Source: Monocercomonoides exilis PA203
Taxonomy: Eukaryota > Protista > Preaxostyla
Length of the DNA stretch: 64,000 bases
Assembly: GCA_001643675.2 (NCBI GenBank)
Contig: LSRY02000001.1
Span: 496,001 to 560,000, forward strand
Direction of reading: 5' to 3'
The notes below the pieces were generated by a model. The model was not told where the DNA came from. It did not search any database and saw only the letters and a list, made by a program, of their open reading frames with translations. Shown piece after piece: positions 35,412 through 50,392 of this stretch (position 1 is the first letter of the stretch; each line of letters opens with the position of its first letter). A program made the translations under genes and the position numbers.

Positions 35412-38048
35412 TTGGGCTTGATCTGGACCATCCTATCTATTTGGGACAAATGTTTTTTTTTAATTTCCGATTTTGTTTATTGGGGAAATGTTTTAATGTT
35501 TAGCGTCATTAAAATTGAAATACTTTTTAGTTTTTAAATAGAAAATTATTTGAATTATTTGAATTATCACTACTGTTATTATTTTATGCAACTTTTTCTT
35601 TTTTATTAAATTTTTTTGCGTTATTTGAATGTTGTTACAAATGTGATTGGAACTATAAATTGAAAAATGTTTCTTTTAGGAAAGATTATATTTTCATTTG
35701 TCGCATATGAACATATATGTTGTTTCTAAAAGAATTTAACAAATTAAAAATTTGGTTTTTTGAATCAAAAATTTTTCCTCAATATCGTGAGCAATTTTTC
35801 CTTTATTCGTTTTCTATTTGGAAATTCTTTAAAAAGATATTCTTCTTGTTGGTCAAATTAATTCAACTTTTTAAATATGTTGTGAAAACAGTTGTGATAC
35901 GAAATTTTTTTGTTTGAATCTTGTTGTTTGAAATAAGAAATTTTGTGAAATTGCAATGCTTTACCATGGCCTCTAATGAATAATCTTTTCTTGAAGGAGT
36001 TATTGGAGAATAATCATCATCTTTCAATATTACTAATATTGAAAAGGCTAAAAACGAATTGAATTCAATTAGAAAAGCAAATTTGTAATTGATCGTATCG
36101 TTACTTTTTTGAGTACTTGCATGAGTGAAAATTGTGTCAGAAATGTAGATTAATAACGATAAAGAAGAATTTGTTTGAGTGGTAATGAAATTATGTGACT
36201 CATCTTCAGTAAATGAACCATATGAGCCTTCGCATCGCACTGTTTTAGAACGTATTGCGATATCATTTGCGCTTCATTATGGCTACCTTTCTTATTATTC
36301 AATGGGTGCAGCAATAGTGAAGGAACATGAAATTGATGAAATCAATCCTGAATATTCAAATGAGAAGAGGAATTGCAGGTATCCATTACTGCTATTATCA
36401 ATATTTGATGGTTAGGAAAGCAGCTTGAAGATATTTATGAAATGGAAAGCTCATGAATGGTTGAAATAAGCAAATAGTCACACAACAAAGAAGACAGTTG
36501 GGTTTTGGTCCATGATGATGTGGTGATGTTCGAAGCAATGTGTATCTCATTTTGCGGGAATATTCTTCACCAGTTGCCAGTTATTCCTTTTAAAAGTATA
36601 AAGGACTCATATGAAATTATTTCATTTACGGACTTGAAGAGAGAGAAAATGATACAAGAAATATCTATGAAACGATAAGCATTTTGATTGTTTTGAGATT
36701 AGATAAGGTAAGAGCAGAAGATAGGGGTACCTAAAAATCTTAAACCTAATCATTCATCCTGCATAATAATCAAGCCACATGCTATTTATAAGATAAATAA
36801 TAACAATTTTTTAGGTTTGGAGAAAAATTAGAGTGTATCAATGAATAAATCATGAAAAAAAGAAACCCAAAATATTAGCAAAAAAAATAATTTTGTAGCA
36901 TCATGGTTATCCACAACTTCAAAATCTTCTTTAAATGCAACACCATTGAAAAGCATGATATTACGTCCTGTTTCTAGGTATTTGACAGTAATAATTTAAT
37001 TTTTCCTTTTCATATCAATATTATTAAATGGAACAAAATATAAAAAAACTTGAAAATAAATCGGAATATGAAATGTTTGTGCCATTTTTCCTTCATAATT
37101 TTCTTATTTGATATGTAACTTATATGAAACACATGAATAAATGTGAATATCATTTTTATTACAAAATATTGCAAAACAATGAAAAAACTTTGGTACCACT
37201 ATTTTCTGCATTTACCTTCGATAATAATAAAATAATGGAATCAATATGCATTAACTTTTTAATTCATTTCATACTTAATGGCGTTAAACCATAATGCCGA
37301 ATAGCAACTGGAAAAAACAGACTATTGATATCCTCTTTTCTCAGGATGAAATGAATGGAGTAATACATAAGTATTAGAAACATATGCAAATATTTTTGAA
37401 ACTTGTTTTATACATCATTTGCTTAGAAATTGTTTATCAAATAAAATCTACAAATATTTAATGATACAAGAAAATATATCGTTTATTCTCCCACAAATCA
37501 CAATAAATTCGTTATTTTCATGCGCATCGTTAAATCTTATTGATATCTTCACTCTTCCACAAGTTTCACTTTTTCTTCAAATCCACATGATCTCTCATTT
37601 CTTCAATTCATAAATGCTTCTCTCATTAATTACTGCTCAGATGCAATCTATTCTTTCAAATTTCTTTCATTGAAAAAGTAATTTGTCAAAAGTTTCATGG
37701 AATATCGAAAAATAAATTGATTTTGAGATAATGATAGTGAGATCCATTTTGATTATGAAAACTGTAACAATAGACCTTGTTCTTCATGAACTTTCGCATC
37801 ATCAAAATTCATCGATAAAAAATATTAATCAATTGGAAAACTATTTATTCTGACGATGAAGCTTAAAGATCGATTTAACAAAATTATCATAATAACTTAC
37901 AAGATATTTGTTTTCTTCTTAAATTTTTCACTCTGTTCTACCAAAATCAAACAATAATTCACAATGATTTCGCAGTATTTACCAAATTAATATCTTTTTC
38001 ATTTAAAGACCTTTTCAATCAAAAAGAAAAAATTGATTATTTGCATGG

Positions 38049-38053
38049 AAAAA
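38049..38053 (-). terminator. Pol III oligo-T terminator of tRNA-Thr
   Basis: TTTTT on the minus strand, 3 nt after the discriminator base. Confidence 0.7.
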
Positions 38054-38056
38054 GGA

Positions 38057-38129
38057 AGCCTCAACGGAGAATCGAACTCCGGACCTCTTGCTTACTAGGC
38101 AAGCGCTCTGCCAACTAAGCCATTGAGGC
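38057..38129 (-). tRNA. trnT-AGT: tRNA-Thr (anticodon AGT)
   Basis: The minus strand reads GCCTCAATGGCTTAGTTGGCAGAGCGCTTGCCTAGTAAGCAAGAGGTCCGGAGTTCGATTCTCCGTTGAGGCT. This gives a 7-bp acceptor stem, anticodon arm CTTGC-CTAGTAA-GCAAG and T-loop GTTCGATTC. Confidence 0.97.
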
Positions 38130-38139
38130 TTTCGTCAGT

Positions 38140-40483
38140 TGACCTTTTCTGAATTTATCTGGTCAATTCGTATTGTTATTGCAAATTCGTATTTAATCAA
38201 TTATTTCCGTTTCGACTCAATCAAAACGGTTTTATGTCTATCTTTTTTGATCTTTAGAAAATTTTTAATATGTTTTTCATCTGATCATAATTTATCATAT
38301 CTTTATTATTTCTTATGAAATACAATGATCAAAGTATTGAAACGCTGGAATCAGTAATTATAATATATTAGCGACACATTTATGAAGTGTTTGATTATCA
38401 TCTTTCACTCTGATTCTGTGACATTTTTATCTCTAATGTTTACGTTTTTTGAAGATGTGAGAGTTTTATAATTTAAAAACGGAGTGAATATGTTTTCCCC
38501 ATATAACTCTGGAGCTTTCCATTTATTGTTAATTGCGATTTTTGTGTTTTTCACAAATAAATTTACATATCAATAATGTTTGTTAAGCTTTTTTATGAAA
38601 ACAACAAAACAAGAGTTTTTTCAATGACGAAATTTATTGTTTTTTTATTTTTAACAAGAAAAAAAATGAAAATTTTCAAAACTGTTCATTGTTATATGAT
38701 TTTTTGAGGTGTCTGAACAATACAGGAAAAATAATAATAATAAACAGTTCTAATGTTGACAATTCAGTAAAAACTGAAGGGGTGTTTGATTAGGTTTTCT
38801 GGTTGAATTTTGTGTTGAAGATGACGAAGCGGATGAGGAAGATGATGGAAGTGAAGGAAACTGTTGTGAGGAAGGTGGAAAAAGTGTGCTAACAGATTTC
38901 CATTGATTTGGGATAAACCATGACAAAGAATTATCGGAATTTTGAAGCTGAATGTTGTGCTCGTCCCTTCCCCTACTCAGTAAATCTGATCTCTGCTGCT
39001 CTCTTTGGATCATTACTTTCTCTTGTTCATTTTCTCTTCTTTCTTTGGCTTTTGACATTGCGTATGTCTCATCTGAGCTATCTAAAATAAAATAAAACAT
39101 AAATATGGGTAACGAGAAGGAAAAAAAAGTCAATAAATCAGAAAATAAATGCAATATGGGTATTTAAGTGTTCAAAAAACTTGTTGATTCTGCAGTTAAA
39201 GACGTAATTGTGGGAGTTAATGAATCTTTTGGATTAAGTTTATTTCTTAATCTGGCAAGGTATCTTTCATTTGCAAGGCTCTTTGCTTCCTGTTTTCGAA
39301 GATAATCGCTTATCATTCCATCCAAAAATCTTGAATTTGCTTGTGAGTCAATCGCAGTGAGTGGATTATGAAGAATATGAAAATTAGTTAGGCAGCAAGC
39401 CACATTGAAATAGTCAGCAATTCGATCAATTTCGAATATCCATGGTTTGCGAAAGATGGAGAAGAGTGTTTTCATCCTTCCAAAGAACCTTTCAACTATT
39501 ACACGATGGGAAGCAAGCTCCTGTGTGCCAACGGGCTTTGTTATGATAGCGTCAAGGTCTGGTCTGGCACCAATATATGCAGAATCAGCTAGAATTTTGG
39601 ATCCCTCCAGTTTTGATTCAAACAATGGATAATGCTCTTTGAATATAACATAGTCATGCGTGGAGCCTGAGTAAATAGCGCTAATGGTGCTTGCTGTGCC
39701 AACCTTTGGGTTAACGCCCACTTCTGCCTTGACACAGTAAATATGGTGTTTTCCACTAAAGAACTTTTTTCCATATTCCAATCGACCACCTGGTCGGTTA
39801 GTCGGAATCACAGTGCAATCAAGCACTATTCCAACATCCTTCATGCTCTCTATTCTGTCTTTGCGGAACGACAGAAAAAGATCGGCCAAAGGCGCTCGAA
39901 GCCGAGACACAATGGAATGAAGCAGTCTTACAGTCGCACTTTGAGAGTCGAGTTTTTTTGATGCAAGTATGTTTGTGAGGGTGCAAGAGCCGTGATGGAG
40001 AACATTCAAAAGCAAAAATAATTGCTCTTCCAGTGTGTTAATTGCTTTTGCCTTTCCCCGATGAGGAAGTGAATCATCTGGAAGCAGTCTTAGTAACATG
40101 TCAAATTCTGATCGCACAAAGCCCGTGAGTCGAAAGAATGCACGAGATGGGTCCTTCACATCTTTGCATGCACATTCGATAAGTGATAGGTTTTCTTTTC
40201 TTTTCGTTGATTCAAAATGTTCAGGTATTGCGTTTCTTCTTTCAACACATTCCAAAACATCCAAAAGTGGAGATTGTGACATCAAAAAATTTTTCAACAA
40301 TAAAAAAATTGATCAAACCCATATTTTTGAAAATATCTGAAGAAAGATCACAAACCCAGAATTTGTTAAATTGGTCGTGACTTAATCAAATCGGTTTTGA
40401 GTCGATCTTTTTGGTATTATGAACCACTTTTTGGTCTTAGTCGAAGCTAATACCGCATTACTTAATAATTTCGTTTTAGTTCT
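38140..40483 (-). mobile_element. Element E1 (2344 bp), putatively autonomous, nearest the tRNA
   Basis: Flanked by AGT/AGT, with imperfect TIRs, shared subterminal GACTCAATCAAA motifs and an intact transposase gene. Confidence 0.88.
38750..40282 (-). CDS. DDE_Tnp_4-type transposase of E1 (exons 40282-39181, 39081-38750), intact
   Basis: HTH_Tnp_4-like FFRLTGF..EFD, then LDCT..NRP, FSGKHH, GSTHD, LADSAYIG and RVIVERFFGRMK (D-D-E triad). A 99-nt phase-1 GT-AG intron precedes the C-terminal exon. Confidence 0.9.
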
Positions 40484-40486
40484 AGT

Positions 40487-41455
40487 AGAACTTGATTGAT
40501 TTGACTGAGTCGCGAAAATGTGACTCAGTCAAATCGATTTATGTCTGGTTTATTGAATTTCTCTATTTTTTATCGAATTTCCCTCAATCTTAAGAAGGGC
40601 GAAAATGTGATTTTTATGATCACAAAACGTGATCGAGCATTTTTTTGTTTTGTTTATATTTTGACCTGTAAAATCATGTTGATGTTTATTTTTTGATATG
40701 TTGCTATTTAATTTGTGTTTATTCAATATTTATCTCATTTTTTGGTGTTTTAAAAGTTTGATTCAGCTTTTTGATAATTTCACATTTTTGTTATTGCGAC
40801 TTTGTTATCAACTTTTTTGATTGAAATCGATACAAAACTTTTTGTATTTAATATGATAAACGTTTGCACATACGATTTATTTGAGTTTTTTTTGTTTATG
40901 AAAATATTTTTAACATTTTGTTTTTTTAAATGTGCATCATGTTTTGAACTGAATTGTTTTATGTTGTTTTGATTACTTGTTTAACAAATAAAAAAAGAAA
41001 GATGTTGCAAGCATTGTTCTTTTGAAATTTCATTCATTTCAAATTTTTTGAAAAGTTATAATAAAAACAAAATATTTTTGTTAAGAGTAATTCTTAGTTC
41101 GCGATAATCACATAAATAGTTTTTATTTAATGTGACAATACTTTCTGATAATTTCAAATTTATTAAAAAGGTTAAACTCAAAATTATTTATGTTTTTTTG
41201 AAACTTTTATAAAAATTTCATATAATTTTTTATAAAAACAATTATAAATGAATTTTATTCAGCTTTCTGAAAGAAAAAACAAAGTTTTAACAAGAAATAT
41301 TTTTTGTTTAAATTAGGATCAGGAGACCCAGAATTGAAAACATCGGATGCGACTGAGTCACATCCAATTTGACTGCATCTTAATGGCATTAGATCGATCT
41401 TATTGGATGTTGACCGATCTAATGCCACTTGACGCAGTCAAATCAATCAAGTTCT
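40487..41455. mobile_element. Non-autonomous element M1 (969 bp)
   Basis: Perfect 21-bp TIR AGAACTTGATTGATTTGACTG...CAGTCAAATCAATCAAGTTCT, AGT flanks, no significant ORF. Confidence 0.9.
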
Positions 41456-41458
41456 AGT

Positions 41459-43796
41459 AGAACTTGTTCGAATTTTCCCTGCCGCACCGAATTGATCCTG
41501 TTAATTCGAATTATTTGTGACTTTTTGAATGTTTCTCGCTCAATTCGGTATTTTCTCAATCTTTTTCCAGGCAACTCGAGGATTTTCAAATTTTTTTTGT
41601 TTTGTGACTTGTGATCTTAACTTTTTTTGTTTATTAAATTACTTCACCATTATTTTGAGTTAGGTTTTAACTTTTTGTTTGTATGTTTATTATATGTAAT
41701 TAAAACTTTTTATGATCGGTTTTTGGTGTTTTGATTATTTTTTGAACAGTGCATTTATATCATGTTTTTATGCAATTTTAACGAGTATAAATAACTTTTA
41801 ACCATTTTTAACTATATTTTTTATATGTTTAGTATAAATATGAAAGTTCTTAATGTTTTAATTATATTTTTTTAATAAATTCAGACATTTCACATTTTTA
41901 TTTTTTGTTTTGAGTATTAACAATGAAATAAAGTTATTCGATAAAAATTTCTTGTATTCTTATGTATGTTTTATGTTAAATTAAACAAAAAAACTTATCA
42001 ATAATAAAATCATATTGTATTAAGATAAAAAGGTAACAAAGGTGAATTGAAAAATATAAAATTGCAAAGAAACTCAGTGTTTTGCGTTCAATAAGCTCTG
42101 CAAAGGAGTTTCGCTGACTCTTTTTTCTTTTATTGAAGCACTAGAGGAAGAAGCAGATGGAAAGGAAGACGATGATGAGGGTTGCTGAAGGCGAAGAGAC
42201 CTCCACTGATTTGGTAAAAACCAACTTGATGATTCATCACTGTTTCTTTCTCTTTCTTCATCTTCATCTCTTTCGTTAATAATTATTTCATCTCTCCTTT
42301 CCTTTTCTTCAACTGTTTTCTTTTCTTTCTTCTCCTTTTCATCTTTTCTTTCTTTTTCTCTTTGATCTTCACCAGTTCGCTGCTCTTGGGCTTCAGAATT
42401 GCCTGAAAAACATAGTTATGGTAATGTAAATATAAAAACAAGTAAAATAAACGATATAAACATAAATATGGGTAAAAATAAAAAAGTCTAACTATCTTCC
42501 GAATAAAACAGAGTTGTGATTGATGATGGTGTAGGAGCTTCAGGATTCAATCTTTTCTTCATATTGACTCGATAGCGTTCATTAGCGATTCGCTTTGCTT
42601 CCACTTTCTTCTCATGTGACTGCATCAGATATCCAATGAATCGAGAATTTGCATCTGAGTCGACTGCAGTCAGTGGGTTTTTCAGGATGTGAAAATTCGT
42701 TAAACAGCATGCAATTGTAAAATACTCCGCCACTCTTTCCACTTCAAATGGCCATGGACGCCTGAAAACTGCAAAAAGAGTCTTCAACCTCCCAAAAAAT
42801 CGCTCGACAATTACTCTTTTGCATGCCAATTCGGGTGTTCCGACAGGTTTTGAGATTATTGCACCCAATTCTGGCCTTGCTCCAATGTATGCTGAGTCAG
42901 CAAGTATCTTTGCTCCTCCCAATTGACTCTCAAATTGAGGTAAATGATCTTTGAAAAGGACAAAATCATGTGTTGACCCAGTTTGAACGTGGCTAATTGT
43001 ACAAGCAGTACCAATTCGAGGATTAACACCAACTTCCACCTTCACACAGTAAATATGATGCTTTCCACTATAAAATTTCTTTCCATATTCCAACCTCCCA
43101 CCTGGTCGATTTGTTGGAATTACAGTACAATCCAAAACAAGACCCACCTCCTTCATTCCTTCTAGACGATCTGGGCGAAAAGTGAGAAATAAATCAGTCA
43201 AGGGCACTCTGATGTCTGCAGCAATTCTGTGAAGAAGTCGAATTGTTGCATTTTGAGTGTCATAAAAAGAAGAAGAAAGCATAAATGTTAGTGTGGTGGA
43301 TCCATGATGAAGAAAAGTGAGTAATAGAAAAAGTTGATCAGAAAAATTGTTCATTGCTTTATCTTATCCTTGGTGAGGAGATATTTCTTTTTGAAGAAGT
43401 TGAAGTAATAAATCGAACTCAAATCGGGCGAAGCCCGTAAAGCGAAAAAAAGCAGTTGGTGTGTTGTCCAAAATATTCAAAGCTCTTTCGATGATTGAAG
43501 TGGTTTTTTTTGTTTCTTTGATAGCAGGAGAAGCAGGCATTTTATTTCTTTCTTCTACTCTCTCCAATACACTCAAAAGTGAAGATTCAGACATTGATCG
43601 AAACAGTCAAAAAATGATAACAACAAACACACCCTTTATATGTAAATATTTTTGTGATCAAAAAGGACCCATGATAAAAAACAATGGATGTGATTAAATC
43701 ACATTGGAACTTAGTCGATCTTTTTGGAATGATATCAAACTCATACCAAAAAGAAAATATTAATACGATATAACTAAATAAATTCGAATAAGTTCT
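41459..43796 (-). mobile_element. Element E2 (2338 bp)
   Basis: TIR AGAACTTGTTCGAATTT / AAATTCGAATAAGTTCT (16/17 match), AGT flanks. Confidence 0.9.
42074..43594 (-). pseudogene. E2 transposase with one in-frame nonsense codon (TAA at 43366-43364); intron 42492-42403
   Basis: PHQG*DKAMNN aligns to E1 PHRGKAKAINT. DDE motifs are intact. Exon 2 contains SWFLPNQWRS and ends TPLQSLLNAKH*. Confidence 0.85.
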
Positions 43797-43799
43797 AGT

Positions 43800-46170
43800 T
43801 GAGCTTTTTCGAATTGAGTGCATAATTTTGATTTGACTCAATCAACTTGCATTTAGTCAATCTTATTTGATTTGACTTTATCAAATCTGATTTGAATAAA
43901 TCATTTTTTGATCTTTTTTGAAAACAATTATGAGTCAATTACGATCAAGATATTGATTTAATTTTTCAAACTCTCTTCCTTGTTGGTAGATCTTAATAAT
44001 ACAACAAGTTTGTGAATTCTCTTTTTGATTGTTTTTAGTATTTATTGTTTATTTTCAACATCTCTTCTTCTGATTCGGATCATAATGAACAATTTGATAC
44101 TTACATTTTTAACACGAGCAAGAGATGATCAACAGTTGAAATTTAATTTATATCTGTATTTCAGAAAAACAAAAAGCTCTTTCGATCCAATTTTGTTTTC
44201 TTTTTTGTTTTTGTTAGGTTTTTTTTTCATTTCATTTTTAATAATGTATTTTGAATATAAAACAAACAAATATTTAGAAATTTTATAAATAAATGCAATT
44301 TTTGTTTTTCATTCAAAAAAATAAATTCTGAATTGGAAATATTAATTATTAAAGATTATAAAAAAGATGAGATGGTTGCTAAAAGAAGTTAAAGAAAAAT
44401 TAAATGATAATCACTTTTTATTCAGCAACGATTGAAGAACAGATGGGGGTTTATTTTGTTTTGAACCAACAGAAGAGGAAGAAGAAGCAGTTGATGAAGA
44501 TGATGATGAAAAGGAAGTAGAAGGTTGTGATTGTGAAAATGAAGGAAAAGGTTGAGTTGAAAATGGAGAAAAAATACTTATCGACTTCCATTGCTGCGGA
44601 AGGTGCCAAGCTTGTGAATTATCACAATTTTGATTTTCATCAAAATCATTTCTTTCTTTTTCCAAAACCTGTTCCCTTTGCTCGCTTCTTTGTACTAAAA
44701 CTTCGCTATTCGCTCTTTCTCTTCTTTCTTTAGCTTTTTCTGCTTCGTACGCCGTTTGATCATCATCAGAAGCATCTAAAATAAAAAAATATGGTAAAAT
44801 GATGTTTATAAAAATGAAAAAATTGTAATAAAATATAAAAAATAATGGTAAAAAAGTGAAAGATAAGCCTCCAATTTCTGCCAAAATTGTAGTTATTGTG
44901 GGTGTCAGTGTATTTTCTGGATTGAGTTTATTTTTCATTTTGGCGAAATATCGAGCATTAGCCACCTTCTTTGAATCAACTTTTCTCAAGTAATTCGAAT
45001 ATAACTCCTCCAAAAACAATGAATTTGCTTCAAAATCCTTATTTGTGAGTGGATTGTGCAAGATATGAAAGTTTGTGATGCAGCAAGCCACTGAAAAATA
45101 GTCCCCAACACGCTCCATTTCAAAAACCCACGGATGACGGAAGACAGAAAAGAGAGTTTTGAGCCTTCCAAAGAATCTTTCAACAATAACACGATGAGAT
45201 GCAAGCTCAGGAGTTCCAACGGGCTTTGTAATAATCGCCCCAAGCTCTGGTTTCGCTCCCATGTTAGCGGAATCGGCCAAAATCTTAACTCCTCCAAGCT
45301 TTTGAACAAATGTGGAGTAATGTTCTTTGAAAAAAGTGAAATCGTGAGTTGACCCAGAGTAAATAGAACTGATTGTACTTGCTGTCCCCACCTTGTGGTT
45401 CACTCCCACATCCGCCTTAACGCAATAGATGTGATGCTTCCCTGAGTAGTATTTTTTTCCAAACTCCAACCTCCCTCCAGGCCTGTTTGTAGGTATTACT
45501 GTGCAGTCAAGCACAATTCCCACCTCCTTCATTTGCTCTAATCGATCTGGACGAAATGAAAGAAAAAGATTTGCAAGTTGAGGTTTTAAATTTGATGCTG
45601 TTGAATGAAGAAGTCGAACAGTTGATGTTTGAGATTCGTGTTTTGATTGAGATATGACGTGAGTTAAAGAAATGGAGCCGTGGTGAAGAAAAACTAACAA
45701 AAGAAAAAGTTGTTCATCCAAAGATTCGATTGATTTTGCCCTTCCACGATGAGGTTGGGCTGAAGATGAGAGAAGACGAAGAAGCAAGTCGAATTCATGA
45801 CGAACAAACCCAGTCAGTCGGTGAAAACCGAAAGATGGGTCAGAAAATTTTTTACAAAATTTATCGATGATTGATTGCTGATCATCATCAGATTTAATCT
45901 CGACATGAGATGGCATCACATTTCTTTTCTCCACGCTCTTCAAAATATCGAAAAATGGAGATTGAGACATGAATGATGAAGTTTCAAAAAAGTTAAATAC
46001 AAAAACACCCATTAATAACAATTATTATCGATCATATTCGCACCCACAATTATAGTAATTTGCATTGACTCAATCAAATCGATTTGTCTCGATCTAATTT
46101 GCATTATATTTAACTTATCTGCTTTAGCAAAGGCAAATAATATATGACCAGTTCAAATCGCATAAGTTCT
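43800..46170 (-). mobile_element. Element E3 (2371 bp)
   Basis: AGT flanks, ends TGAGCTTTTTCGAATTGA / TCAAATCGCATAAGTTCT, shared subterminal motifs. Confidence 0.87.
44411..45970 (-). CDS. DDE_Tnp_4-type transposase of E3, open frame; probable 93-nt GC-AG intron 44868-44776
   Basis: Starts MSQSPFFD and contains LDCT, YSGKHH, LADSANMG and RVIVERFFGRLK. The C-terminal exon has AWHLPQQWKS and ends VLQSLLNKK. Confidence 0.88.
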   Translation of the reverse strand: MSQSPFFDILKSVEKRNVMPSHVEIKSDDDQQSIIDKFCKKFSDPSFGFHRLTGFVRHEFDLLLRLLSSSAQPHRGRAKSIESLDEQLFLLLVFLHHGSISLTHVISQSKHESQTSTVRLLHSTASNLKPQLANLFLSFRPDRLEQMKEVGIVLDCTVIPTNRPGGRLEFGKKYYSGKHHIYCVKADVGVNHKVGTASTISSIYSGSTHDFTFFKEHYSTFVQKLGGVKILADSANMGAKPELGAIITKPVGTPELASHRVIVERFFGRLKTLFSVFRHPWVFEMERVGDYFSVACCITNFHILHNPLTNKDFEANSLFLEELYSNYLRKVDSKKVANARYFAKMKNKLNPENTLTPTITTILAEIGGLSFTFLPLFFIFYYNFFIFINIILPYFFILDASDDDQTAYEAEKAKERRERANSEVLVQRSEQREQVLEKERNDFDENQNCDNSQAWHLPQQWKSISIFSPFSTQPFPSFSQSQPSTSFSSSSSSTASSSSSVGSKQNKPPSVLQSLLNKK

Positions 46171-46173
46171 AGT

Positions 46174-47140
46174 AGAACTTGATTAATTTGACTGAGTCGC
46201 GAAAATGTGACTCAGTCAAATCGATTTTTGTCTGGTTTATCGAATTTCTCTATTTTTAATCGAATTTCTCTCAATCTCAACAAGGGCGAAATTGTAATTT
46301 TTATGATCACAAATTGTGATCGAACATTTTTTTGTTTTGTTAATTTTTTTATTATTACAAGTTCACAAACGTTGAATTTTCAATATATTATTGTTTAAAA
46401 TACTTTTTTTAATATTCGTTAGATTTTTTGTTGTTCACTTTGTTTGATTCTGGTTTTTTGAAACCTTAAAATTTCGCAATTGTGGCTCAATTGTTTACTT
46501 TTATTGTTGAAATTGAACCAAATTTGTTTATATTTTGTACAACAAACATTTTTATATCTTTTTTTTTGTTAATTTTTAATATTTACAAAAAATTAAACTT
46601 TTTTGTGTTTTCTTAACTGTTGTGTGTTTATTAATCAATCATTGTTTGATATTTTTTCATTTCGAATAAAAATTGAAAAGAAGATATGATTCTAAAGCTT
46701 CTTTTTTTGTATTTTTTCTTTTTTCTGAAAATTATTGAGAAACGCAAAAAACAAATGAAACTTGTTCTAAAGATTGAAAAATGAAATGAAATTTACATGT
46801 ATCATTATAATTAATCACCAATAATTATTATCAAACAAAAACAATTTGAATTCCCAGGATATTCCGTTTAATACCAATAATTTTTAAAAACTTAAAGAAT
46901 AAGAAACTATTTTGAATGAAAAATCATTAAATTCTATCAAAATGTTATAAAATTGAACGCAATTTATTAATTTAAATTATAATTTTTAATAAAAATTCTT
47001 TGATCATGAAACCCAGAATTGAAAGCATCGAATGTGACTCAGTCACATCCAATTTGACTGCGTCTTAATGGCATTAGATCGATCTTATTGGATGTTGACC
47101 GATCTGATGCCACTTGATGCAGTCAAATCAATCAAGTTCT
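46174..47140. mobile_element. Non-autonomous element M2 (967 bp), same family as M1
   Basis: TIR AGAACTTGATTAATTTGACTG / CAGTCAAATCAATCAAGTTCT, AGT flanks. The ~150-bp ends are nearly identical to M1. Confidence 0.9.
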
Positions 47141-47143
47141 AGT

Positions 47144-49470
47144 AGACGTTTTTCGAATCTTGGACAAAAAATTAATTTGAATAAATAACATAGATGTCAA
47201 CCTCTTTTTTTGGTATTGATTCAATCAAATTGGAACTTTCTCAATCTCACTTGGTTTAAAATAGGAATTACGAAATGTTTGAAAAACTGATCTTATTATT
47301 TTTTTGTTTCTTCTTTTATTTGATTCTTTCGTTTCGATTATTCACAAAACTTTGATTTAATGTGCATCAATATTAAATTCATGGTGTTTTGATCTGTTTT
47401 CAGCAAATTTTGAGTTTTTAAAAAGTTCAAAAGGTTTGCAATAATTTTAAATTCTTACACATGATAAACTTACGATTGAACATTTTAACGAATTCTTATG
47501 ATTATTTTCACATGTTATAAGCTATCAACAGCTGCGCCGTTTTATTTTAAATCAGGATCATTAATAACACTTTTTCAACGTTTATTTCAAATAAAACTCA
47601 AGGGAAAACAACGATTTTTGTTTCATTTTAATATTTTCCATTAATATTTCATGATATACGAACAATAAATTATATTTTTATTCGCTTTTATTATTTTTTA
47701 TTAAAAAAGGTGAATGATTGAAAAATAGAAAAAAGAAAAGAAAAAAACTAATTTCTTTGTTCCAAAAGAAGCCTCAAAGGACTTGGCGTAATTCTTTTCA
47801 CCTTTTCTGGTTCTGATGAACGTGATGTTGAAGGAAAAGGAGATGAAGAAGATGCAGAAGAAGGTTGGATTGATTTCCACTGACCTGGTAAATACCAGGC
47901 CATAGAATTATTATCTTCGTCATTATCATTTTCTTTCAAATCAATCCTTTTCGTTTCATTTCTATCTTTATCTTCTTTTTCTTCTTTTTCTTCGATTTTT
48001 TGCTTTTCTTTCTTTTCTTCTTCACAATTCTTTTTCAGTGCGCCTTCCTTTTCATTCTGTGAAATATCTGAATAAAAAAAATGAGAAAATATAATGGTTG
48101 AAAGAGTAATCAAAAAAATCAAATAAAAGATAATGAATATAAATATGGGTAAAGAAATGAATAACAAACTGTCTATTTGTGTGCATAAAGTAGTTATCGT
48201 GAGTGTAATTGACAAGCTCGGATTCAAATTATTATTCTATTTTATTCGATATCTCTCATTCGCTATTTGTCTTGCTTTTTGTTTTTGTAAATGCTCCGTT
48301 CACAAGTTGTCCAAAATACGCTGATTTGCTTCCCCATCTGCCCTTGTCAACGGATTTCGTAATATCTGAATATTTGTCGAACGACAAGCCACACAGAAAT
48401 AATCTCCAACCCTTTCAACTTCAAATGGCAACTGTCTTCGAAAAACTGAAAAGAGGGTCTTCAGACGATCGAAAAAACGTTCCACGATGACTCGATGAGT
48501 AGCTAGCTCTGGAGTTCCCACTGGTTTGGTGATGATTGCAGCCATATCAGGTCTCGCACCTATGTAAGCTGAATCAGCCAGTATTTTTGCCCCTCCCAAA
48601 CGATCCAAAAATTGAGGATAATGATCTTTAAAAATTGAAAAGTTATGAGTGGAGCCAGAATGAATTGCACTGATAGTACTCGCTGTCCCAACTTTGGGAT
48701 TGACTCCGACCTCTGCTTTCACACAATATGTGTGATGTTTCCCGCTAAAAAACTTCTTCCCGAAGTCTTATCTACCTCCAGGTCTGTTGATGGGAATGAT
48801 TGTGTAGTCCAAAATAATTCCAATCTCCTTCATCACTTCAATCCTGTCAGGGCGAAATGTCAAAAACATATCTGCTAATGGAGCTCTGATATGAGAAACG
48901 ATACTTAGAAGAAGTCGGACAAGAGCGTTTTGAATTTCATAGAAAGGTGAGGATAAAATAGGTGTGAGTGTTGTTGAACCGTGATGAAGAAAAGTGAGCA
49001 GCAAGAATAACTGTTCATCAAAATTATTGATTGCATTTTGTTTCTCTCGACGATGAGGAACTTCCATTTGAAGAATGTGAATGAGAAAATCAAATTCTTC
49101 TTTTGTAAATCCAGTGAGTCGAAAAAAAGAAAAAACAGGATCATCAAAATAATCACAAGCTTTTTTGATGATGGAAATCTTTTCTTCTTTTTGAAGTGAT
49201 TCATTCCGTTGCGGAATAATATTTCTCCTCTCCACACTCTTCAAAACGTCCAAAAAATTTGAATGTGACATTTAAAAAAATAAGAACAACTTTCGTTTGA
49301 TCACAACCAAATATTGAAATTCTGTTAATAACGATCACGAAACCAACATTTGTGAATATGAATGTTATTGAATCAAATCAAATAAGTTTGATTCTTTTCG
49401 GTCTTTAATCCATATAATAAAGTGTGAACATATCTTTTGCGGATACATCAAATAAAATACAAAAGGTTCT
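47144..49470 (-). mobile_element. Element E4 (2327 bp), decayed
   Basis: Left flank AGT, right flank ATT. Ends AGACGTTTTTCGAA / AAAAGGTTCT. Confidence 0.85.
47748..49271 (-). pseudogene. E4 transposase pseudogene (several stops plus a frameshift); intron 48169-48068
   Basis: GGR*DFGKKF is followed by a 1-nt frameshift into SGKHHTYCVK, with further stops at DNL* and RIK*. Exon 2 has AWYLPGQWKS and ends PLRLLLEQRN. Confidence 0.85.
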
Positions 49471-49473
49471 ATT

Positions 49474-50268
49474 AGAACTTTAACGAATTGAGCTGGTCAA
49501 TACGAATTGATAAAATCAAAACATTTTAAGTTTTTTTATTAGTTTTGACTCAATCAATTCGGTTTTCCCTCTATCTTTTTTGTGATCAAAAAATCAAAAA
49601 TTATGTATCAATTTTTATCGAAATTCTTAGAAGTTTTTTGTGTTTTCTGAAACAGAGCAGTTTGTATTTATAAATTTTTTGATATGTTGATTATTTCTTA
49701 ATTTATTATTTGTATGTTGTTCATTTTTTTCTGAACAATGTATGAAATTGAACGATTTTATTCATTTTTGAGTAATTATTCGAAGAGATGTGTTTTCAAT
49801 GAATAATTTTGTTGTTTAAGTCATTTGAATCTATGTTTTTCTTTTCTTTTTAATTCAATTTATTATAACCTTGTTCTATTTTGATCATTTTATTTGAACA
49901 CTTCAAATCAATAAATTATAATTAAAAGAATAATAAACACTTTTTATTTTTTGAATTCATTCTATTTTGACAGATAGAAAATTGAACAAAGGATTTTTAA
50001 AAGTGTGAAAACTTTAAAACTCCATTTTTTTCAAGAAGAAACATGAACTTAATAATTTTTATGAAATAGACTTCATTTATTGATGAAAAATTGACAAAAA
50101 CAAAACTCTTTATTTTGTTGATTTTCAAATAATCGTATACCCAGAATTGAATCAATCGGTCTTGACTCAATCAAAACGGTTTTGAGTCTTCCTTTTTGGT
50201 TTTATGAACTACTAGTTGGACTTAGACTGAACTAACGGGTATTGATTTGATAATTTCGTTTAAGGTCT
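49474..50268. mobile_element. Non-autonomous element E5 (795 bp) with E1-like ends, most distal from the tRNA
   Basis: ATT/ATT flanks. The last ~130 bp align with the E1 right end (CCCAGAATT..GACTCAATCAAAACGGTTTTGAGTC..ATAATTTCGTTTAAGGTCT), and the left end resembles the E1 left end (CTGGTCAAT.CG.ATTG). Confidence 0.85.
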
Positions 50269-50392
50269 ATTTGGTTATTTATATTGCTAGAAGTTAATAC
50301 ATATTTCATACAAATTAAAGATTTTAATTCTTTAACTTTAAAGTTTTGAAAATATTTTTTTTTTTTTTGTTATTTTTGAAGATACCAAAATA

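Follow-up and report, generated by a model that had tools for sequence, protein, structure and literature searches.

Stacked PIF/Harbinger-like DNA transposons upstream of transfer RNA genes in Monocercomonoides exilis

Position-specific targeting of genes transcribed by RNA polymerase III (Pol III) has so far been a textbook property of retrotransposons. The DNA discussed here comes from Monocercomonoides exilis PA203 (contig LSRY02000001.1 of assembly GCA_001643675.2, positions 496,001 to 560,000 of the forward strand), and this whole stretch of 64,000 nucleotides (nt) is called the window below. It holds a transfer RNA (tRNA) gene, tRNA-Thr(AGT), and directly upstream of it seven units of a DNA transposon family that appears to be directed to tRNA genes. 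The features of the array are given below by window position; the “left” end of an element is the one nearer the 3' end of its transposase gene.

The array upstream of tRNA-Thr(AGT)

38057..38129, minus strand: tRNA-Thr(AGT) gene, the anchor of the stack (ARAGORN; Rfam RF00005, 67.1 bits)
38130..38139: 10 nt between the tRNA 5' end and E1; AGT at 38137-38139 is the proximal copy of the target-site duplication
38140..40483, minus strand: E1, autonomous, 2344 base pairs (bp); Pfam DDE_Tnp_4, E = 4e-23; a copy with 97.6% nucleotide identity lies on contig C25
40487..41455, minus strand: M1, non-autonomous, 969 bp, with a 24-bp terminal inverted repeat (TIR); left end toward the tRNA gene
41459..43796, minus strand: E2, autonomous-type, 2338 bp, with one in-frame stop in exon 1
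43800..46170, minus strand: E3, autonomous, 2371 bp; copies with 96% nucleotide identity at loci L011 and L015
46174..47140, minus strand: M2, non-autonomous, 967 bp, a relative of M1
47144..49470, minus strand: E4, degraded autonomous-type, 2327 bp, with four stops across the match
49474..50268, minus strand: E5, non-autonomous, 795 bp, the outermost unit, with ATT on either side and host DNA beyond
50269..50271: ATT, the distal copy of the 3-bp duplication

The units span 38140-50268, and exactly 3 nt lie between every neighbouring pair. The spacer is AGT six times (starting at 38137, 40484, 41456, 43797, 46171 and 47141) and ATT twice (49471 and 50269), and junctions in the array have the pattern ...AAGTTCT + 3 nt + AGAACTT... 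(repeat family D7). The first AGT occupies -8 to -10 counted from the tRNA-Thr 5' end at 38129, and the four DDE_Tnp_4 open reading frames (ORFs) are all on the tRNA (minus) strand, upstream of the gene. A preliminary description of this DNA had claimed seven TIR-bounded units set end to end with a 3-bp separation, a first site at -8 to -10, transposases all on the tRNA strand and unit lengths of about 2.35, 0.97 and 0.8 kb; the junctions and unit ends as read from the sequence agree with it on each point. It had also taken the transposases for diverged paralogues and not the outcome of simple tandem duplication, which is upheld by the four autonomous units being only 63-72% identical to one another in DNA. 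Two details need correction: the autonomous units have short, imperfect TIRs (E1 begins TGACC, not AGAAC), and stops interrupt E2 and E4.

With so little DNA identity among its autonomous units, the array is neither a collapsed repeat nor the result of tandem duplication. Points in favour of an assembly artefact, or of a duplication of either the segmental or the tandem kind, are the nanopore basis of the published assembly (PMC8767320), short-read contigs that break at the repeated ends, and duplicated, inverted pairs of tRNA gene plus element elsewhere in the genome (L051/L052 and L058/L059). Such an origin is nevertheless very improbable, given this divergence between neighbours, the three length classes, and the recurrence of the architecture at many loci, where both the tRNAs and the order of units differ. 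A 147-nt contig of a 2016 run (window 40369-40515) also crosses the E1-M1 junction, with 29 nt on the M1 side, which is below the 31-nt rule for bridging. A 267-nt contig of a 2016 run (window 37944-38129) matches the tRNA gene and its downstream flank, but its remaining 81 nt, from precisely the tRNA 5' end onward, diverge; the contig could come from a second allele, or from a paralogous locus that carries some other element upstream.

The autonomous unit, about 2.35 kb long, has one gene. All four ORFs match Pfam DDE_Tnp_4 (PF13359; E = 4e-23, 1e-21, 2e-15 and 1e-10), and E1 and E3 retain intact catalytic D, D, E motifs in a context typical of IS5/PIF. Together with the direct repeats described below, these matches confirm the earlier assignment to a DDE_Tnp_4 cut-and-paste family with 3-bp target duplications. 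The closest named proteins are annotated [quoted passage not shown] and are up to 98% identical; the score with the NCBIfam IS5 model NF033581 fell far short, at 28 bits compared to a cut-off of 140. Exon 1 encodes about 372 amino acids (aa), and in E1 it is an ORF at 39164-40282 (372 aa) with the DDE triad intact. It is followed by an AT-rich stretch of about 100 nt, which has stops in E1, E2 and E4 and is therefore read as a putative intron. The stretch is in frame in E3, where a 536-codon open frame (44411-46021) runs through the putative intron.

Beyond the putative intron, exon 2 (38753-39082 in E1) encodes a C-terminal tail of about 105-120 aa that comprises a segment rich in Lys and Glu, the invariant motif W..P.QW.S, a stretch rich in Ser and, at its end, L..LL. 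The tail is conserved among the paralogues, and its profile matches 112 places in the genome, most of them beside listed transposase matches. Since the tail recurs even beside copies only about 50% identical in exon 1, its conservation points to a conserved function. About 20 of the 112 matches lie away from any listed transposase match and may be family copies beyond the 109 scored. Across the genome, no clear host gene or other transposase family was matched by the profile, and a Pfam scan of the N-terminal 150 aa and of the tail gave no match.

A Myb-like second ORF was not found among the four 2.3-kb units, in which only the two transposase exons are conserved in frame; other open stretches of at least 45 aa are alternate frames or are unshared between copies. 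This check was made by frame comparison, as the Pfam scan covered the transposase parts and the other open stretches lay outside it. M1, M2 and E5 are non-autonomous elements that share the family ends, and the M1/M2 type (about 970 bp) has at least 40 relatives in the genome.

Transposon copies and tRNA genes across the genome

A six-frame search of the genome (82.3 Mb in 101 contigs) yielded at least 109 transposase matches, many in same-strand clusters; 45 are free of stops. Sixty of these loci were inspected, namely the 30 best (with 1.5 kb on either side) and 30 cluster-terminal copies (2.2 kb beyond the ORF), and 12 have a tRNA gene directly at the element end. Seven of the direct junctions are from the 30 best loci (Thr-AGT, Asn, Leu-CAA, Tyr, Val-AAC, Gly and Phe), with the left end proximal in six and the copy at Phe (L008) inverted. 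The other five are from the cluster-terminal copies (Ala, Phe, Arg-ACG and two intron-bearing tRNAs), three more of which reach a tRNA gene via stacked elements. In all, five of the inspected loci connect to a same-strand tRNA gene through stacked elements (L092, L115, L118, L002 via L122, and L022 via L073), and most of the remaining copies are bordered by the ends of further elements.

The association can also be read from the side of the tRNA genes. The set consisted of the 63 best-scoring tRNA matches of a whole-genome Rfam search, chosen blind to transposons. By coordinates only, 10-11 of the 63 have a transposase match on the same strand within 10 kb upstream, compared to about 0.4 expected. 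The 140 nt upstream were inspected for 60 of these genes and then for the remaining three. The Harbinger-like family occupies 8 of the 60 sampled genes, always with the left end proximal, and these represent five independent events (Gln-TTG, Arg-ACG, Thr-TGT and, twice, Glu-TTC).

Taken together, the two approaches yield 17 independent junctions that involve at least 15 tRNA species and have a median gap of about 8 nt (range 5-12): Thr-AGT, Asn, Leu-CAA, Tyr, Val-AAC, Gly, Ala, Phe (two), Arg-ACG, Leu-TAA, Gln-TTG, Thr-TGT, Glu-TTC (two) and intron-bearing tRNAs (two). The left end is proximal at 16 of them, for which the binomial probability under random orientation is about 1e-4. The proposed genome-wide association with tRNA genes thus holds. 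The fixed position and orientation that had been proposed along with it become a strong bias: insertions lie near the tRNA start and nearly all face one way, but the target zone extends from -3 to -12 and is not a single base, L008 is inverted, and at least one solo copy, the E3-type L025 (G000:C8:294178-298281), is off target.

That the tRNA gene might itself be part of the element was considered and rejected, because near-identical copies stand beside different tRNAs. E1 is found at Thr-AGT, and its copy on C25 is separated from tRNA-Leu(TAA) by an M element that adjoins this tRNA gene.

Untargeted insertion could give a similar picture if only the copies just upstream of tRNA genes survived purifying selection in a gene-dense genome. 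The M. exilis genome is indeed compact, with a mean intergenic length of 870 bp and 153 tRNA genes (PMC6759080), and the solo off-target copy would fit as well. Selection, however, cannot account for a zone of about 8 bp, the 16:1 orientation bias, or the re-used 3-mer and the lack of A-N-T at empty tRNA genes that are described in the next section. The upstream regions of 5S and U6 genes should also be as safe, yet they are empty. This makes survival without targeting an unlikely account.

A second alternative is that the elements target the ends or junctions of resident elements and that tRNA genes were the chance first landing. Most copies are flanked by other elements and not by a tRNA gene, the exact 3-bp spacing is compatible with insertion into any existing junction, and the stacks combine three repeat families. 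Against this, 17 independent first-position junctions with different tRNAs demand recognition of the tRNA gene. Also, spacers of 6 nt or more (L006, L030 and L116) keep tRNA-upstream DNA, so the site is chosen relative to the gene and not to the previous element end. As an account of where the elements land, such nesting is improbable, although re-use of a regenerated 3-mer surely contributes to stacking.

Besides the Harbinger-like family, two other repeat families occupy seven more of the sampled tRNA genes, with ends 6-11 nt upstream followed by an A-N-T-like 3-mer. Family 2 (L044, L045 and L057) ends in AGCGTGTCAAATACCCGGG, and family 3 (L048, L069, L073, L084, L092 and L115) ends in CGGGGAGGAAACCCG or GAGGGATTTAACCCGG. 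Both are found in mixed stacks with the Harbinger-like family, and the ORFs in their flanking pieces have no Pfam match.

A number of tRNA genes are paired and have identical upstream sequence, whether occupied or empty (L051/L052, L058/L059, L087/L088, L063/L064, L044/L045 and L124/L125), and some pairs are inverted and 0.7-20 kb apart. Inverted pairs with identical upstream sequence indicate local inverted duplications of tRNA loci.

The target site and a model of insertion

Solo or outermost copies are flanked by 3-bp direct repeats, which are ATT/ATT at L025 and E5 and AGC/AGC at L012. The duplicated site is nearly always A-N-T (AGT, ACT, AAT or ATT) and rarely AGC or GTT, in line with the earlier expectation that its sequence would vary by locus.

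The empty tRNA genes carry a trace of this preference. Only 2 of 44 distinct unoccupied genes have an A-N-T within -12 to -3, compared to 13.6 +/- 2.3 expected from column shuffles. Six control trinucleotide classes were counted as well: TNA, ANA, TNT and CNT match the expectation, while ANC and CNA exceed it by about 2.5-3 standard deviations. Adding back the 15-17 occupied genes brings the share of A-N-T roughly to expectation. Since the empty genes are almost without A-N-T at these positions, the usable sites look saturated, and the simplest reading of these counts is that nearly every tRNA gene with an A-N-T in the zone has already been hit. Such a lack at empty genes hints at an arms race between host and element that can be read from the sequence.

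The 44 unoccupied genes share an upstream pattern, with an A-run at -21 to -17, a T/C-rich part at -14 to -6 and AA(C/G)AA at -5 to -1, so that the target zone falls between the native A-run and the tRNA gene. The right flank of the solo copy L025 starts with TTCAACAA, which resembles the last bases of this native motif; no tRNA gene is there. Other Pol III genes look different. Eight 5S genes were sampled, of which three are dispersed; like the one U6 gene, they show a TATAAAAGG box near -30 and an A-N-T in the zone. No element was found upstream of these nine genes, although few 5S genes were sampled and tandem arrays homogenise. Because these genes stay empty in spite of their A-N-T, recognition seems specific to tRNA genes; being a Pol III gene, or having the sequence, would not be enough. 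About 45 5S ribosomal RNA genes lie in two facing tandem arrays (G000:C15:1360580-1435538) with a period of 1.3-1.4 kb, and a single U6 gene was found in the genome.

The best explanation, to which we give a probability of about 85%, is a single-gene DDE_Tnp_4 (PIF/Harbinger-like) cut-and-paste family that is directed, along with its non-autonomous derivatives, to about 3-12 bp upstream of mature tRNA 5' ends. Integration would occur into an A-N-T within this zone and duplicate it, with the transposase-gene 3'-side end toward the tRNA gene. Each insertion would regenerate the 3-mer beside the tRNA gene, so that later insertions could re-use it and push older elements outward. This means that gap-free, head-to-tail stacks with one locus-specific spacer would result, and that stacks would grow only on the tRNA-proximal side.

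The spacers bear on this model. In the stack on contig C21, AGC is found at the tRNA-Lys junction and again around an E1-type copy (L012) 6.5 kb farther out, which suggests that the spacer is inherited through the stack from the gene's own upstream site. With such inheritance, the switch from AGT (inner) to ATT (outer) in the tRNA-Thr array needs only one mutation. Growth from the inside out would fit these patterns, which do not prove it. At some junctions within stacks the spacer is longer than 3 nt, at 6-9 nt (L006, L013, L030, L022 and L019), for example ACTAAT, AATAAT and ACTAGAACT; two target sites side by side, or footprints of excision, may account for these.

Judged by its position, the zone would be the Pol III start region. 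It lies between the upstream A-run and the gene, and in other eukaryotes Pol III starts there. The landmark for the retrotransposon Ty3 is TFIIIB (PMC5911963). Because the zone lies where Pol III would start, the landmark is probably the TFIIIC/TFIIIB complex on genes with an A-box and a B-box, as it is for Ty3. The conserved C-terminal tail would be the best candidate for a tether to Pol III factors. Targeting motifs at the C-terminus of integrases are a precedent for such a role. The orientation bias would further need either an asymmetric contact or selection after insertion.

A fuller hypothesis is tentative, and we lean somewhat against it. In it, the DDE transposase would be tethered, in the manner of Ty3, to the Pol III pre-initiation complex through the W..P.QW.S and L..LL motifs of the tail, with only an A-N-T needed in the DNA. 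Together with the two further repeat families, this one would have filled the usable tRNA genes, the stacks would record the order of insertion, and the upstream regions would have been purged of A-N-T.

Several observations weigh against targeted insertion or against parts of the model. At L025 the family has inserted cleanly as a solo copy, and neither a tRNA gene nor an Rfam match lies in its vicinity, so targeting is not absolute, and the orientation of L008 is the reverse of the others. Most of the 60 inspected transposase loci were not walked to the end of their stack, which makes the tRNA-anchored fraction a lower bound. Correlated promoter positions could partly contribute to the depletion of A-N-T. 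Stop codons counted by rank within same-strand clusters show about 11 rises and 9 falls going away from the tRNA gene; without a steady rise with distance, these counts do not establish strict inside-out growth. Finally, the short contigs of public runs from one sample show no transposition event, empty allele or polymorphism, and the contigs of the public runs do not bridge the stack.

Relatives and known systems

The best relatives outside M. exilis are proteins with 33-37% identity on metagenomic contigs. One of these, a 2-kb contig from another sample (L127), has a DDE_Tnp_4 element (35% identical) 4-5 nt upstream of a tRNA-Asp gene. Its TIR resembles the M. exilis left ends, and its transposase gene is directed away from the tRNA gene. 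From this one case, the tRNA-upstream trait may be older than M. exilis. A second contig (L128) encodes the same protein and stops short of the tRNA side, and a third (L130) has AGACC... TIRs flanked by AAT and ATT. Eleven contigs besides that of L127 were examined, L128 among them; on none of the others, which include a 13-kb locus of an NCBI genome, was a tRNA gene seen. A more distant relative in an NCBI genome has no tRNA gene within 6 kb, and a motif like the tail was absent from the six foreign contigs scanned.

Classical PIF/Harbinger elements duplicate a TWA site (TAA or TTA) and carry a second ORF that is Myb/SANT-like. The M. exilis family is like them in its DDE_Tnp_4 domain with an intact triad, short TIRs, a 3-bp duplication with a palindromic consensus and abundant non-autonomous derivatives. 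It differs in duplicating A-N-T and not TWA, in being a single-gene family with no Myb/SANT-like ORF found, in its additional conserved C-terminal tail and in its position- and orientation-biased insertion upstream of tRNA genes. It is also distant in sequence, at no more than 37% identity outside M. exilis. The Spy group makes no target-site duplication and inserts between AAA and TTT, unlike the solo copies described here with their 3-bp direct repeats. A bacterial parallel is Tn7, a DDE transposon that inserts at attTn7, adjoining an essential conserved gene, in one orientation, through the target selector TnsD and at a single site per genome. The M. exilis family likewise sits beside and not inside a conserved gene, nearly always in one orientation, but Tn7 relies on a dedicated DNA-binding selector for its one genomic site, whereas the M. 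exilis family is found at many tRNA genes.

Among eukaryotic DNA transposons, Dada elements specialise on multicopy small-RNA genes, tRNA genes included (PMC3706591, PMC8869645), and are similar in this respect. Dada, however, disrupts the RNA gene by landing within it, at a sequence specific to the family, and each lineage is tied to one target sequence. The M. exilis junctions are outside the gene, 5-12 nt upstream, and the tRNA genes beside them are intact, score highly and are of many kinds; the sequence requirement is only 3 nt. A 2022 paper counts Pokey, CryptonV and Dada as the DNA transposons of eukaryotes that are target-specific, and the known ones act by sequence and within their targets (PMC8869645).

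The landing site is closer to that of Ty3, Tj1, Tyl3 and NLTR-A, retrotransposons that integrate a few bp from the Pol III start of tRNA genes (PMC5911963). Common to both are a narrow zone just upstream of many tRNA genes, indifference to tRNA identity and the logic of a safe haven in a compact genome. As retroelements, the former integrate by means of an integrase or by target-primed reverse transcription, whereas the M. exilis family is a DDE cut-and-paste DNA transposon. A 2018 review table of tRNA-adjacent elements contains retrotransposons only (PMC5911963), the two M. exilis genome papers are silent on these elements (PMC8767320, PMC6759080), and no prior description of a DNA transposon with upstream tRNA targeting was found in the literature searched. 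The family may then be described as PIF/Harbinger-like, with a target rule that is new and a landing site like that of Ty3. If this is true, it would add a new case of convergent evolution toward a safe haven in a compact genome and offer a tractable system for how a cut-and-paste transpososome reads a protein landmark. It could possibly also serve as a starting point for safe-harbour gene insertion.

Elsewhere in the window, on the minus strand, an uninterrupted ORF of 9013 codons extends over 7708-34749. Neither half has a Pfam domain at E 1e-5 or better. The ORF lies in a block of about 50% guanine plus cytosine (G+C) within a region of about 30% G+C, with a strong GC skew.

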